NCBI GenBank assembly: GCA_024626585.2
Contig: JANKJI020000002.1
Coordinates: 216,440,745-216,479,324 of the forward strand
Source of the DNA: Ginkgo biloba
Lineage: Eukaryota; Plantae; Ginkgophyta
Length of the DNA stretch: 38,580 nt
Direction: 5' to 3'
The translations under genes were made by a program, and so were the position numbers. Positions 3,557 to 37,365 of this stretch are shown in pieces. The notes below the pieces were generated by a model, which was not told the DNA's origin, did not search any database, and saw only the letters and a list, made by a program, of their open reading frames with translations. Numbering within the stretch: position 1 is the stretch's first letter; the number at the start of each line of letters is the position of its first letter.

Positions 3557-4148
3557 GCTCTAATACCAAATGATATACCTATTGGAAAAGTTCTAAAGGT
3601 AACCCTTCAATATATGGAAACATTGATAAAAAACTAAGGGTTAATCCTCTCTTTTGTATTAATATAACCACTATTATACCTATTATATTAATCTGTCTAT
3701 ACAAACAGTATGGGTCCATGCCTATATACAATTGATTTCAATGAGTGATTTTGTATGATGCATCTCTAGAAGAAAAGGTACAATATTTTTCATGAACATT
3801 CTCAACTTTTCTAAATGCATCGTGATTTTCGTGAGTTACATTATAGTTTTTCTCTTTATGCCATTATAGGTTTTTCCTAAATCGTATAGTTTTCTTGAAA
3901 GCTAAAATTAGTAAGGAAAGATTTTATAGAAGTATGAACTCCATATGTAAAATGAGACAACGACTCAACAATACCCTATTGACCTGAAACTCACTTGTAT
4001 GAATCCCAACACTAAGATTCAACGTTCTATGAATTATGAAGAAAGGATCTAAAAAATTAACAAGAGAATCACATAGCAATTAGATAAAGAAGAAGCTCTC
4101 TCAATTACAAGTCTGAAAGTGTAAAAGATACAAATGGTAATGGTTACA
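3557..4148 (-). mobile_element. PBS plus 5' LTR of a minus-strand LTR retrotransposon (outer boundary tentative)
   Basis: GCTCTAATACCA at 3557-3568 (reverse complement TGGTATTAGAGC), then AA, then TG at 3571. A possible far end is GGTTACA at ~4148. Confidence 0.55.
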
Positions 4149-6631: not shown

Positions 6632-7177
6632 NNNNNNNNNNNNNNNNNNNNNNNNNNNNNNNNNNNNNNNNNNNNNNNNNNNNNNNNNNNNNNNNNNNNN
6701 NNNNNNNNNNNNNNNNNNNNNNNNNNNNNNNCCAATGGGTCTGATTGGGCCTTGGTAAAGCCTCTAAAATTGATCCATGTGGATAGTCTCTAATTCATAG
6801 AAGTTGTTGCTGAGTGTCATCTCGTTCTATGTGTCCAGCGTAAAGAGGTGCTCGTAAATCAGGCTCTCTGGATCTGATTCATGCGTATCCAGAAGGTGAG
6901 GTATCATTTACGAGCGCAATATAGCCATGGATTACTTGAGATGACACGATGCATTTGCTAGACATTGTTCGTTCCAAGTGGCATGGCAATACATCCCAGA
7001 TGATTTGGTAGAGGTTCATGGAATAACAGGCCGAGCATTCCATGTTGATTCTCAGAATTTTGAACTTGGCTACTATGGTTATAGTCTAGCCCAACAGAAA
7101 GTTGGTGATAATACAAAGGGGAGGAGGTCACGTAGAAAGAACATAAAGACATCACAGAACTCAATGCCCAACTGATG

Positions 7178-7347
7178 GTCATCTTGATTGTCTTGGACTT
7201 GACCATAGGTGGGATCTTGGGCACATTAATTGTTAAAACACCATCCACACACGACGTAGAAATGGAATCCACATTGGTGTCCCTGGGCAATGCAAAATAA
7301 AACGATAATTTACAGGGCACTCGAGCTTCCAAATGTAAGATCTTGGT
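7178..7347 (-). pseudogene. Small heat-shock protein (HSP20/alpha-crystallin) C-terminal fragment, class II/III-like
   Basis: TKILHLEARVPCKLSFYFALPRDTNVDSISTSCVDGVLTINVPKIPPMVKSKTIKMTIS matches the sHSP consensus (ERR.GKF.RKF.LP.NAN.D.ISA.C.DGVLTVTV.K.PP...KTI.V.I). The N-terminal half is not seen upstream. Confidence 0.8.
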
Positions 7348-16160: not shown

Positions 16161-17256
16161 AACGGGCGGTACATCATCAAGCACCTTCTTCACATTTGGA
16201 AACAATTTTTAATAATGTTTCTTCTAATTCCCTTCGACTTTCCTGCCTCTATTTATCCAACATCTCCTCCTTCAATGGATGAGGAGGAATCCTATCCACT
16301 TCTATTGAAGGCTCTCTTGCATTTCCTCGACTCCCACTTGAGTTGGGACTGAAATGTTAGGCCTCCATATCTACCTTGTCCTGAGCCTCATGTAGAAATG
16401 CATCTAGTCCTCTATGAATTTCTCACACCTCCCAAGACTAATGTCCAACCTTGCAGTTTAGTGAGGGTGAGACAAATAAAACCTGTAAAATTTACAAAGT
16501 CCTCCAGGTTGATGACTGGCATCCCGACAAATAATGAGATCAGGGACTGCATGGGTAAATTGTGCTCACTTACCACAAGATTCCTTCAATGGTCCCCCTG
16601 ATTGTCCTCCACCTTTGGAAGCTTCCTCCTGAGAAAAATTCATATCATCCTCATCATTCTCATCCTATGACATTATCAATTGCCTCTATTTCTGCTATAA
16701 GTCCTATGGAGGATTAGTCACCTAGTCAACATCATACAACTTTACTCATGATTGTGGAGCCTCTAGATATACAATCTTGCTCATCAACTAATAATGCAAT
16801 TATAGTTCTATATCAAGGTAGCTCCATGATCAAAATTGCAATAGACACCGTAAATAGCCATGATGGAACACTGCCAATTTGTCATCTTGTGATTCTAAAC
16901 AATACTAGCCATTACATATAAACTGTTCCTTAGAAATCTGAAACGAACATTGATGATTATTTGCACCATAAAACATTGAGACATGATGTTGCTTGATACA
17001 AATATACCCTTCATCACAAAAGAAGAAGTTCCTAGAAGATAACATCAATATACGATCACTAGAAAATCTCAGAAACATATGACATATGACATCCTAGAAG
17101 CCTTATATGTCTATATGCAAGTAGACAAATGAGACAAGTAGAACCAATGTTTAAATGTTCAAATGTTGAGGAGATACATGCCATCTTGCTGAATGCACGC
17201 GGGTGTATCTACTCTAGTAATGCTTCAAGCACGAAGTGTTTTCAAATGGAAGGACT

Positions 17257-18045
17257 TGTTATGACCTTGATTAACAAGTCTATGTAATTGCACATTAATT
17301 ATCAATAATTGGACAAGCTAGTAGTTAGGGTATTGCGTTCTTTGTGTTGAGATTGAGACCAAGATGCGTGGATTATCGAAGTATGGTATGCCAAGATGTC
17401 AAGAGACAAGAGGACTTGGTTCTACTAGAGTTGGGGCTTGTGGTTGATACTTTCTAGTAGCCATCAACTAAGGGACGAGTTTATTTAAAAGGGTGGAGAT
17501 GGTAATGACCCTTCTTGTATCTATTATAAGAACATGATGATGATTCAAATACAACACCTATAGGTCTTTTGGTGAGTTGGTTCAAGGTATTTTAGATGAG
17601 AACTCCATGGTTAGGCGAGCTCACCTTCGAGCATTGGTTGGATGGGTGACCTCTTGCGAAGTAGTGTCAATGTGTGGCACATAGAAGTTGGTATTAGAGT
17701 CCAAGGTAAATTATGTTCTTTATGTTGAGACTTAGACTAAAATGGGTGGCTTACTCAAGTACAATTACGATGGCACAATTAAGATGTCAACAAACATGAA
17801 TTCTTAGTTATGCTAGAGTTGTGGCTTGTAATTGATACTCTCTAGGAGTGTTAGACTCTAGAACGAACCTATTCCAAAGGGTGAAGATTGTAATGACCTT
17901 TGTATCTGTTATAATTAATGTATACTCATTATATTTTAGTACTTAATGTAATTTATACATTAAAGGTGTCATGAATTAATGTCATAAGTCCTAAGTGTAA
18001 ATAAGGGTCCAAGAGAGTCACTACATGGATGTCATGCAGAGGGAG
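17257..18045 (+). mobile_element. Cassandra-like non-autonomous LTR element (TRIM) in tandem arrangement, with a 5S rRNA-derived segment in the LTR
   Basis: LTR-start motif TGTAATGACC-like at 17257, 17501 and 17889. PPT-like AAAGGGTGGAGAT before 17501 and AAAGGGTGAAGAT before 17889. tRNA-iMet PBS TGGTATTAGAGT at 17689-17700. Two homologous non-coding internal domains (~17325-17500 and ~17701-17888). 5S-like segment at 17596-17662. Confidence 0.8.
17596..17662 (+). promoter_or_regulatory. 5S rRNA-derived internal Pol III promoter segment (box A, IE, box C), degenerate
   Basis: Gapless hand alignment to recalled plant 5S rRNA gives about 47/67 identity. It contains AGAACTCC, box A-like GGTTAGGCGAGC (17609-17620) and exact GGATGGGTGACCTC (17640-17653). 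The 5S 5' and 3' ends are absent. Confidence 0.85.
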
Positions 18046-20438
18046 NNNNNNNNNNNNNNNNNNNNNNNNNNNNNNNNNNNNNNNNNNNNNNNNNNNNNNN
18101 NNNNNNNNNNNNNNNNNNNNNNNNNNNNNNNNNNNNNNNNNNNNNATGAAGTGATTCATTATCTACATTCTGGCTGCAAGTAGCTTCTGTCAACTGACGA
18201 AAAACTACCTACAGTTTTAGTGCAAATAACCGCAATCACATACACATAATAATTCCAACATGATATGGTAGGCTATATTAGCAAAATGGTACTTGCAAGT
18301 TATCAATTCTTTAACTAAGCTGCTACAGTCTTCTTCGTCCATCTCCAATCACGGTCTGCAGGTATGCCTGTGGGCCTACATGGCACTTCCTATCGTCATC
18401 CATCTCACCCTTACTTGCATTTCAGGTGCAAGTAACCCCTTTGGAGGTCAAAATTGCGTCCAACCACCTTGAAACCAAGGGTCATCATTGTACTCTTGTC
18501 AGGTATACATTATTACCAAGAATCAAGAGAAATGGCTGGATGACTGCTTCAGAAGGTGTAGAAAAACTTAGAAAGCAGGACAAAAGATGGGAACAATTCG
18601 AACCCCATCAGCGTCCAACTGTGTTTTTAATTTCCCTAGTCTATTGAGATTCTTTATCAAACCCTCATACTTAGTAATAAAAGAAGGTATCTTCCATCCC
18701 TAGACTTTAATATGCATTTCCTAGGCCAGCCCCATTGATATATACAGCCAATGCTTGGAAACTCGAATCTGTAAGTTTCTACGGCAATCCACCCTTAACT
18801 TTGACTAGCTGCACTTGCAATATTCTTTGGCCATTCTTGAGCTTCCATATGAACAGTCCCAAACTTATTCGGTGCTCTCTCACAGATGGCAGTTTTGTGG
18901 ATACAGATAGCAAGGGTACAAATGATGAATGGACGTTTTATTGTTAAGATGATTTTATTAGATAGAAAGAATTACAAGCAATTCACAATAAAAACTGGGC
19001 GGAGTTAGTACACACTCAAAGTGACACCTCAGCATTTAGAACTGGACAAAGATATAGCCCCATGGGCACATACCTAAAGTACCATAATGGAAGTAGTCAT
19101 GAATGGATGCCTAATTGAAGAACACTTAGCATTAAAGATCAACTGTCAGCCATTGTTGGCTTTTTGCAATAGAATTAGAACAATTTCTATTACTATCACT
19201 ATTTATTCTTCATCATTGTTAATATCATCAGCTTTTTGCATTTATTATTTTTAAGACATTAATGGTCATTGAAAAGGGCACGAATTTGGAATTTCTTCAT
19301 ATTCTCTCCTAANNNNNNNNNNNNNNNNNNNNNNNNNNNNNNNNNNNNNNNNNNNNNNNNNNNNNNNNNNNNNNNNNNNNNNNNNNNNNNNNNNNNNNNN
19401 NNNNNNNNNNNNNNNNNNNNNNNNNNNNNNNNNNNNNNNNNNNNNNNNNNNNNNNNNNNNNNNNNNNNNNNNNNNNNNNNNNNNNNNNNNNNNNNNNNNN
19501 NNNNNNNNNNNNNNNNNNNNNNNNNNNNNNNNNNNNNNNNNNNNNNNNNNNNNNNNNNNNNNNNNNNNNNNNNNNNNNNNNNNNNNNNNNNNNNNNNNNN
19601 NNNNNNNNNNNNNNNNNNNNNNNNNNNNNNNNNNNNNNNNNNNNNNNNNNNNNNNNNNNNNNNNNNNNNNNNNNNNNNNNNNNNNNNNNNNNNNNNNNNN
19701 NNNNNNNNNNNNNNNNNNNNNNNNNNNNNNNNNNNNNNNNNNNNNNNNNNNNNNNNNNNNNNNNNNNNNNNNNNNNNNNNNNNNNNNNNNNNNNNNNNNN
19801 NNNNNNNNNNNNNNNNNNNNNNNNNNNNNNNNNNNNNNNNNNNNNNNNNNNNNNNNNNNNNNNNNNNNNNNNNNNNNNNNNNNNNNNNNNNNNNNNNNNN
19901 NNNNNNNNNNNNNNNNNNNNNNNNNNNNNNNNNNNNNNNNNNNNNNNNNNNNNNNNNNNNNNNNNNNNNNNNNNNNNNNNNNNNNNNNNNNNNNNNNNNN
20001 NNNNNNNNNNNNNNNNNNNNNNNNNNNNNNNNNNNNNNNNNNNNNNNNNNNNNNNNNNNNNNNNNNNNNNNNNNNNNNNNNNNNNNNNNNNNNNNNNNNN
20101 NNNNNNNNNNNNNNNNNNNNNNNNNNNNNNNNNNNNNNNNNNNNNNNNNNNNNNNNNNNNNNNNNNNNNNNNNNNNNNNNNNNNNNNNNNNNNNNNNNNN
20201 NNNNNNNNNNNNNNNNNNNNNNNNNNNNNNNNNNNNNNNNNNNNNNNNNNNNNNNNNNNAAAAGAATTTCTCCGTTGCTGACAAGGAGAGGAGGGCTGAA
20301 ACTGGGAATGATATTCCTTATGAAAAGTAGAGATCTCTATTTTCTTTGTACATTTTAGTTGTTAGCAATATCTATGTATGCTTGTGATCATCCTTGAAAT
20401 TAGACCATTATGGGCTAATATGTGAATTCGTTGTGCAG

Positions 20439-29490: not shown

Positions 29491-29681
29491 GCTCTAATAC
29501 CAAATGATACATGCTGCTAGTGAGGATAACCCATTATAAGGGAAATTTTAGACCTCTACAGGCTAGGAATATACGTAGAACTCATAAGAGTGCGCAATAA
29601 TGTCGATGGAAGTTAAAAATCACACATATATACAACGCTTAATTTGAAGTCTTGGGTTTTCTTCTTCTATTAATTCTAAAA
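29491..29681 (-). mobile_element. PBS/LTR junction of a minus-strand LTR retrotransposon
   Basis: GCTCTAATACCA at 29491-29502, followed by AA and TGATAC at 29505. The junction is the same as at 3557-3575. Confidence 0.55.
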
Positions 29682-36502: not shown

Positions 36503-37365
36503 GCTCTAATACCACTGGCGTAGCAAGACGGCGATAGAGTAGCCACCACCATCGACTTAACTTTTAGGATCTTTCCCTTGACGCTAACACGACCCACTTG
36601 TTAAGAATAGAAAAGAAAAATTATGGCGCTTGCAAAATAAAGAAACGAATGAGGCACAACATGCAATCGATATGTTAGGTTGACACAGGAGTTTTGAACT
36701 GGAGAAACTATCTTGAGGAATAAAATTCTAGGTATATTTAGCAAAAACACCACAGGGACTACGCCCTTACATACATACTCATGCCCACTAGATTTATGAA
36801 TCTGGCCTGTAGCCTATACAATGCCCAATGGCGTTATAATACAGCCACACAGCTTCATTATTCTTGCTTTGATAAGATAACCATGCAAATTCCATGATGC
36901 CTCTTCATTAGAACAACTTCCTCGCTCTCAGGAGTAGCCTTACTCTGCGTGTTGTCCTCTGAATCCTTGCTCCATGGTAATCTTGGCAGACTTCCCTTTG
37001 CCCAATCGTGTCCTACTCCTGAATTTGGATACCGGCTTGTCAATCGCTCTTCTGTTCAATCTACAAACTAACAACACTTCGTTGCTTTCTCTATCTTCTC
37101 TCCCTTTTGTGATTCCTACTGGTTCTATTTATAGGCTAAGATCCAATGGACTCTCTTACTCCTACGCACAATGACTTTCCTACTTTAATGACACTATTAG
37201 GTGAGTATTAATTTTGTAATGGATTCTGTAATTAATGCTTGCCACGTTCATAGAAGTACCTTATCATTTCCATCCTTCACCCTATTGGTTATTGTAATCT
37301 GGCTCACCAACGTGAGTTGATATGGTCTTCTGTTAGTATTGCCTATTATCGATCAATCCTGGCTA
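36503..37365 (-). mobile_element. PBS plus 5' LTR of a minus-strand LTR retrotransposon
   Basis: GCTCTAATACCA at 36503-36514, C, then TG at 36516. A minus-strand TATA (plus-strand CTATTTATAG, ~37125) is followed by a purine-rich R-like region. The far end is probably in the gap. Confidence 0.6.

Follow-up and report, generated by a model that had tools for sequence, protein, structure and literature searches.

The DNA analysed in this study (hereafter, the window) is a very gappy stretch of scaffold, 38,580 nucleotides long, that contains 37 runs of N. Reading of positions 17200-18300, combined with a repeat search, revealed on the + strand an internal block, a purine tract (PPT), a unit bounded by TG and CA, 7 nt, a PBS, a second internal block, a second purine tract, and the stub of an LTR, in this order. 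The individual features, including those located within the TG..CA unit, are as follows.

17335-17486, + strand: internal domain, copy 1; its 5' end is truncated or overlaid by another repeat, and it is 75-81% identical to 17710-17876
17487-17499, + strand: PPT 1 (AAAAGGGTGGAGA), purines at 12 of 13 positions, abutting the TG start of the LTR
17500-17681, + strand: LTR of 182 nt with TG..CA ends, the sole complete copy in the window
17567-17570, + strand: T-run (CTTTTGG), a candidate Pol III stop, upstream of the 5S core
17596-17661, + strand: 5S-derived core (internal control region), equivalent to 5S positions 37-102 without a gap
17609-17620, + strand: box A (GGTTAGGCGAGC), one mismatch to RGTTAAGYRHGY
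17639-17651, + strand: box C (TGGATGGGTGACC), one mismatch to RRRATRGGTRACY, exactly 18 nt after box A
17689-17700, + strand: PBS for the initiator Met tRNA (TGGTATTAGAGT), 7 nt past the LTR end and 37 nt past box C
17701-17876, + strand: internal domain, copy 2, non-coding and homologous to copy 1
17877-17888, + strand: PPT 2 (AAAGGGTGAAGA), before the next TG start, with one T (17888) intervening
17889-17915, + strand: stub of the next LTR (TGTAATGACC...), its first 27 nt, matching 17500-17529 and then broken

Layout of the element and its surroundings

The two internal domains resemble each other far beyond chance, their alignment scoring 167 as compared with 45.6 +/- 6.7 for shuffled sequences. 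Several parts of this layout had been proposed in a sequence-only reading that preceded our analysis, and three of them were confirmed as they stood: a Met PBS behind the LTR (17689-17700, with two C-to-T changes), a non-coding internal domain of about 190 bp (17701-17888, in which no ORF of note was found), and a PPT before each LTR start (17487-17499 and 17877-17888). The same reading had placed an LTR of about 185 bp at 17501-17685. The LTR is indeed there, but its bounds are better set at 17500-17681 (182 nt), given that similarity to other copies of the element begins at 17500-17502 and ends at 17682 (two contigs). The start of a next LTR, also proposed, is present as well, although only about 27 nt of it (17889-17915) precede the break.

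The PBS TGGTATTAGAGT differs from TGGTATCAGAGC at two positions, both of which are C-to-T changes, and the published strict Cassandra pattern, which demands an exact TGGTATCAGAGC, would miss the window copy. A PBS match alone is at the chance level for the window, where five sites were found and 2.3 are expected, so that its meaning comes only from its position. Three further Met PBS-like sites (TGGTATTAGAGC) occur on the - strand at 3557-3568, 29491-29502, and 36503-36514; none of them has a box C nearby, and they probably belong to other LTR elements.

The sequence past 17915 is unrelated to the element and soon runs into an N gap (18046-18145). A different high-copy repeat occupies 17916-18045, where it abuts the broken second LTR and reaches the N gap; its summed contig depth is about 1000 at 17932-17963, and a nested insertion of this repeat may have cut the second LTR. 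Neither a complete LTR-internal-LTR unit nor a target-site duplication was found in the window, which holds no element ends that permit a target-site duplication to be read. We also considered a third LTR upstream of the first internal domain and rejected it, as the resemblances were visible only by eye and the alignment scores did not exceed those of shuffled sequences. The succession of internal domain, LTR, internal domain, and LTR start indicates that the stretch represents part of an array, either tandem or recombined. The full element would measure about 570 bp, as calculated from two LTRs of 182 nt and an internal part of about 207 nt. The copy in the window is a dead relic, with a mutated box A and PBS, an extra TTTT between the presumed transcription start and box A, one LTR missing, and the other cut, and it is without evident effect on its host gene.

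Elsewhere in the window, an ORF at 6958-7332 on the - strand encodes the C-terminal part of an Hsp20 domain (E = 1.4e-6), the sole Pfam match among the ten ORFs searched. A word-based protein search found no homologue of this ORF, which is probably a gene fragment; an ACCase-like exon, searched in the same manner, matched two proteins.

The 5S-derived core and its promoter boxes

References for the analysis of the core were taken from a second metagenome scan with the box A/box C pattern, which returned 120 loci and supplied both plant 5S genes and angiosperm-type Cassandras. The Cassandras recovered were of the grass type (L067 and L073; LTR 280 nt, period 589 nt) and of dicot types (L009, L081, L056, and L091). 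The 5S reference was a plant-type gene on a metagenome contig (L002:2173-2291, - strand), which scores 93.5 bits on the Rfam 5S model.

Against this gene, 48 of the 66 letters of the core are identical, and the alignment score of 60 compares with 16.2 +/- 2.6 in 1000 shuffles (z = 16.9); nothing else in the window matches 5S nearly as well. Conservation is concentrated in the boxes, with 10/12 letters identical in box A and 12/13 in box C, as compared with 8/18 in the stretch between them. Positions 1-36 and 103-120 of 5S are absent from the element, and the match ends 20 nt before the LTR end and 27 nt before the PBS. The sequence-only reading had described a gapless match of 67 nt lying about 23 nt from the 3' end of the LTR, with box A and an intact box C. 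The absence of gaps, the short distance, and the presence of both boxes in the LTR were borne out; the length is 66 nt and the distance 20 nt, and each box, box C included, has one mismatch to the published motif.

A working definition of Cassandra consists of box A RGTTAAGYRHGY, 18 nt, box C RRRATRGGTRACY, and the PBS TGGTATCAGAGC within 5-200 nt (Kalendar et al. 2020, PMC7215508). When the window was searched for box A and box C at this spacing, a single match was obtained, at 17609-17651 with two mismatches, and none of 100 shuffled sequences matched. The T that forms the first letter of box C is shared with the dicot-type Cassandras L056 and L091. In addition, all Cassandras have a core of about 70 bp similar to the 5S internal control region (PMC10853983), and a profile of 22 Cassandra LTRs matched 17599-17674 with E = 2.8e-9.

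The Rfam 5S model (RF00001) gave no match on the whole window, on 1 kb around the core, or on 161 nt around it, either at the gathering score or at E values up to 10. The tandem plant-type 5S genes of L002 and L103, by comparison, reach 73-93 bits on this model. The blank result on the window is nevertheless uninformative, because the model also misses every clear Cassandra locus that we compared. Together with the presence of only a part of 5S, this blank would agree with the segment being a one-off 5S pseudogene fragment in a single repeat copy, or a chance likeness. The z value of 16.9, the exact 18-nt spacing of the boxes, and the failure of all 100 shuffles to reproduce the motif speak against this explanation, and we give it practically no credence.

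Family copies and a proposed life cycle

Copies of the element elsewhere in the genome were sought among the contigs of two DNA runs from the same organism (contig sets of at least 6.6 Gb; single-copy depth about 8-17), which were aligned to 17100-18045 at 80% likeness. Dozens of distinct contigs matched the element at 80% or more, and the summed contig depth over the 5' half of the LTR reached 500-1100, as compared with about 8-17 for the single-copy contigs of the locus. The depth of the LTR contigs dropped between the boxes and recovered over box C. In each run, 16-19 contigs lost alignment at 17589, where a one-letter indel occurs, and then carried GGTTAAGC, that is, an intact start of box A. 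One contig spanned the whole LTR (17498-17682) at about 80% identity, and another spanned 17546-17682 at about 89%.

The sequence-only reading had named a lack of the 5S segment in other genomic copies as the result that would speak against it. What we found was the opposite, as 16-19 contigs per run extend to box A and two span the core at 80-89%. Since the 5S core is common to many copies at the same place, it is a property of the family, and a one-off insertion of a 5S pseudogene is ruled out.

The other copies also shed light on the history of the core. At box A they read GGTTAAGC, with T at 17618, and the letters at 17618, 17628, 17632, 17634, 17636, and 17639 differ from the window in two to four other contigs; all six changes are toward plant 5S. 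When the six letters were swapped to the state of the other copies, identity to 5S rose from 48/66 to 54/66. That all six differing letters are closer to 5S elsewhere indicates that the older state of the family was more 5S-like and that the window copy has drifted.

The boundaries of the LTR were observed at other loci as well. In eight contigs, similarity started at 17502, and the letters upstream were unrelated to the window (agreement 0.47, no higher than chance). Unrelated flanks at the LTR start are what dispersed 5' or solo LTRs would look like. Joints from the LTR into an internal domain were found in other copies (e.g., 17698 to 17391 and 17740 to 17388), and at other loci an internal domain is joined to a complete LTR body (17903 to 17553, separated by 37 LTR-like letters). 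These contig joints support the order LTR-internal-LTR at other loci.

One contig of another run, X17, had an unusual structure. This run is labelled as coming from a second organism and was guessed to be RNA, and some of its pieces are identical to the window locus. The contig had a word depth of about 500, as compared with 3-14 for the others. It contains a joint from 17570 back to 17420, has a period of 151 nt, and breaks at the T-run; its repeat unit consists of the 3' end of the internal domain, the purine tract, and the first 70 nt of the LTR. The same joint was present at single-copy depth in the DNA run X2. The contig may stem from a family member with strong expression or from a local tandem.

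A rival explanation is that the family is a 5S-derived satellite of about 388 bp, in which the PBS and the purine tract would be chance look-alikes. The head-to-tail layout in the window (period 385-388 nt), the joints that go back in several contigs, the 151-nt period in one of them, and a PBS match that by itself is within chance for the window are all compatible with such a satellite. However, the PBS and both purine tracts lie exactly at the repeat boundaries, beside the TG and CA ends; eight contigs begin exactly at the LTR start with unrelated flanks; and tandem arrays are known for Cassandra and other TRIMs (PMC7215508, PMC4717578). We consider a satellite origin to be very improbable.

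Cassandra is defined structurally as a TRIM with the 5S internal control region in its LTR (PMC7215508, PMC10853983), and the anatomy of the element agrees with this definition, as the sequence-only reading had suggested in calling it a Cassandra-like, 5S-carrying TRIM. We are thus confident, short of certainty, that the stretch is an incomplete, decayed remnant of a non-coding, multi-copy TRIM family whose LTR carries the 5S internal control region in the Cassandra design.

The distribution of T-runs bears on how such a family may have been transcribed. The candidate Pol III stop (17567-17570) ends 38 nt before box A in the window; in 21 of the 22 angiosperm-type Cassandra LTRs, a comparable T-run ends 26-28 nt before it. 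Most other copies of the family lack the second TTTT, which the window carries at 17590-17593. No run of four or more T occurs in either internal domain; shuffled sequences were free of TTTT in 21% (17682-17888) and 40% of cases, the two domains not being independent of each other, and this absence weakly supports Pol III read-through. In an oligo-T-primed RNA run (one run), two reads fell on the LTR.

Upstream of the first internal domain, 17283-17334 was covered in the RNA run X22 by 13-19 reads that come from another locus (several letters differ), share about 50 nt with the window, and have oligo-T loose ends before 17283. Polyadenylated RNA made elsewhere therefore contains sequence related to 17283-17334.

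In a type-1 Pol III promoter, the boxes recruit TFIIIA, TFIIIC, and TFIIIB. In intact members of the family, these factors would assemble on the 5S boxes, and Pol III would start about 50 nt upstream of box A, which corresponds to a site near 17560 in the window. The transcript would then run through the PBS, the T-run-free internal domain, and the purine tract, and would terminate once the T-run of the next LTR is reached. The enzymes that copy this RNA into DNA would be supplied by an autonomous LTR retrotransposon, with the initiator Met tRNA priming at the PBS and the purine tract priming the second DNA strand. This model is drawn from the type-1 Pol III promoter and the biology of Cassandra (PMC7215508, PMC10886601), and we infer from it the putative Pol III start and stop, the use of borrowed enzymes, and past mobility of the family. 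Given that the T-run lies 10 nt farther from box A than in the references, the terminal repeat of the transcript would be only about 10 nt, and read-through of the T-run in the 5' LTR would be needed.

Origin of the family and comparison with known systems

Cassandra is the textbook case of a retrotransposon whose Pol II promoter has been swapped for the internal Pol III promoter of a 5S gene. Cassandra TRIMs were reportedly described from ferns and angiosperms by Kalendar and colleagues in 2008, and later accounts of them include Kalendar et al. 2020 and Maiwald et al. 2024. Two papers from 2024 indicate that no Cassandra has been reported from gymnosperms (Maiwald et al., PMC10853983; Garcia et al., PMC10946416), and Cassandra signatures were not seen around gymnosperm 5S insertions (Garcia and Kovarik 2013). 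In the literature searched, which extends to late 2026, we found no published Cassandra or other 5S-bearing TRIM in Ginkgo, conifers, or cycads, and the statement in the sequence-only reading that Cassandra is on record from ferns and angiosperms but not from gymnosperms agrees with this literature. The element is thus probably new for gymnosperms, within the known Cassandra design. That its host lies outside the gymnosperms, the element being a diverged member of a fern or angiosperm Cassandra family already on record, appears unlikely, given the giant genome and the lack of flank similarity to the angiosperm-type Cassandras compared.

The gymnosperm gap in the distribution of Cassandra can reflect either a single origin before the seed plants, with loss in gymnosperms or members overlooked there, or repeated origin. 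A Cassandra-type family in a gymnosperm makes the question of a single origin testable by sequence. One reading, to which we give somewhat less than even odds, is that the element belongs to a gymnosperm (probably Ginkgo) Cassandra-type family whose compact, fern-like build would mark it as an intermediate of a single lineage predating the split of the seed plants. If this is true, the family fills the one gap in a distribution that covers ferns, monocots, and dicots, and a borrowed Pol III promoter has been kept for more than 300 million years.

The rival possibility is convergence, in which an unrelated TRIM independently captured a 5S promoter fragment and acquired a Cassandra-like function without descent from Cassandra. 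An independent uptake of box A, IE, and box C alone has a precedent in Ajax (PMC10886601), a 5S-promoter TRIM of ribbon worms treated alongside the TRIMp3 concept (Kojima 2024, PMC10886601). The sequence comparisons bear on this possibility. Similarity in a blastn search against the 120 metagenome loci was confined to 17596-17665, and nhmmer profiles built from the flanks alone and from the PPT junctions of angiosperm-type Cassandras, with the core removed, found no match on the element. No match outside the core was obtained to any of the angiosperm-type Cassandras compared, and the element is therefore none of the known angiosperm families; a match to a known Cassandra in an angiosperm or fern host had been the other result that the sequence-only reading said would overturn it. 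This comparison of descent covered angiosperm-type loci. Cassandras of different plant families, however, also share little past the core of about 70 bp, with an overall identity of 44% (PMC10853983). The missing flank similarity would thus be anticipated under common descent as well, and it does not discriminate between a deep origin and an independent capture.

Two further observations are in favour of convergence: the spacing of the T-run departs by 10 nt from a value that hardly varies in 21 of 22 reference LTRs, and some copies have stayed very close to 5S between the boxes (54/66), as a more recent capture might explain. Against it, the element and Cassandra share, by eye, the same 5S boundaries, the upstream T-run, a TGTAAT-type start, an AAGGG-type purine tract, and the Met PBS; furthermore, the occurrence of Cassandra in ferns and angiosperms brackets the gymnosperms. 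We hold an independent capture to be less likely than not, and a single ancient lineage likewise falls somewhat short of even odds.

The search of the metagenome contigs also yielded results of its own. The full published pattern with the strict PBS returned no loci from these contigs, and no members of the window's family were found among the 120 loci. A 5S-like core at L076:186-249 has the derived letters GCTCA and TGCGAAGTA in common with the core in the window, with no PBS seen downstream; it may be a distant relative of the window's family in an environmental sample. In a small metagenome Cassandra, L113:184-801, the LTR measures 223 nt and the period 395 nt; its boxes are 16 instead of 18 nt apart, and a PBS TGGTATTAGAGCC is located 75 nt after box C.

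In overall design, the element resembles Cassandra in being a non-coding mini LTR element with a 5S core of about 70 nt, box A and box C separated by 18 nt, a Met PBS, a purine tract, and TG..CA ends, as well as in having a T-run upstream of the core, if at another distance from box A, and in the tandem LTR-internal arrays. By eye, and without statistical support, the likeness extends to the TGTAAT start, the CTTTTGG run, the AAGGG-type purine tract, and the ..ACA end. Known Cassandras range from 563 to 968 bp, and those of ferns and Piperales are about 600 bp long with LTRs of about 200 bp (PMC10853983); the inferred length of about 570 bp and the 182-nt LTR fit this small class. The distance from 5S to the PBS is 27 nt in the window, as compared with 8 nt in ferns, 75 nt in L113, 143-144 nt in grass-type copies, and up to 173 nt in Brassica (PMC7215508). 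The short distance between 5S and the LTR end, which the sequence-only reading had pointed out, fits the fern-like small class, in which the LTR is about 200 bp and the PBS lies near 5S.

The element also differs from the Cassandras compared in several respects. Its LTR (182 nt) is shorter than those of all the references (223-386 nt), its T-run ends 38 nt rather than 26-28 nt before box A, its PBS lies 7 nt rather than 2-3 nt past the LTR end, and its host lineage is probably a gymnosperm. Angiosperm-type Cassandras have a hairpin upstream of the purine tract, while none was seen in the window's element. Perfect hairpins next to the PPT were observed in the grass type (GACCGACG-AGGA-CGTCGGTC) and in L113 (ACATGACG-AGGA-CGTCATGT), and the outer arms of the hairpins in L067, L003, L008, L040, L041, L053, and L113 differ in sequence yet stay complementary.

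With 5S genes and pseudogenes, the element has in common the 66 homologous nucleotides (positions 37-102), in which the promoter boxes are best kept. It differs from them in that the segment is embedded in an LTR beside a PBS, outside an rDNA array, and has no 5S fold scored by Rfam. When repeats are clustered, dispersed 5S-like LTRs of this kind can be misread as 5S rDNA loci or as pseudogenes, and an abundance of 5S pseudogenes has been ascribed to gymnosperm genomes (PMC7025596). The same concern about misidentification of 5S has been raised for FISH (PMC10946416).

The tandemly arrayed TRIMs (Gao et al. 2016, PMC4717578) are similar to the stretch in the window in having more internal domains and LTRs than a two-LTR unit; the stretch differs from them in being a worn fragment with one full LTR, a 27-nt stub, and internal domains that are about 20-25% divergent. 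Ajax is likewise a small element whose LTR contains only the promoter part of 5S (box A, IE, and box C), and its function, too, was deduced from the conservation of motifs. Ajax belongs to an animal lineage and certainly had a separate origin, whereas the element in the window resides in a plant and has flanks that are, by eye, Cassandra-like.
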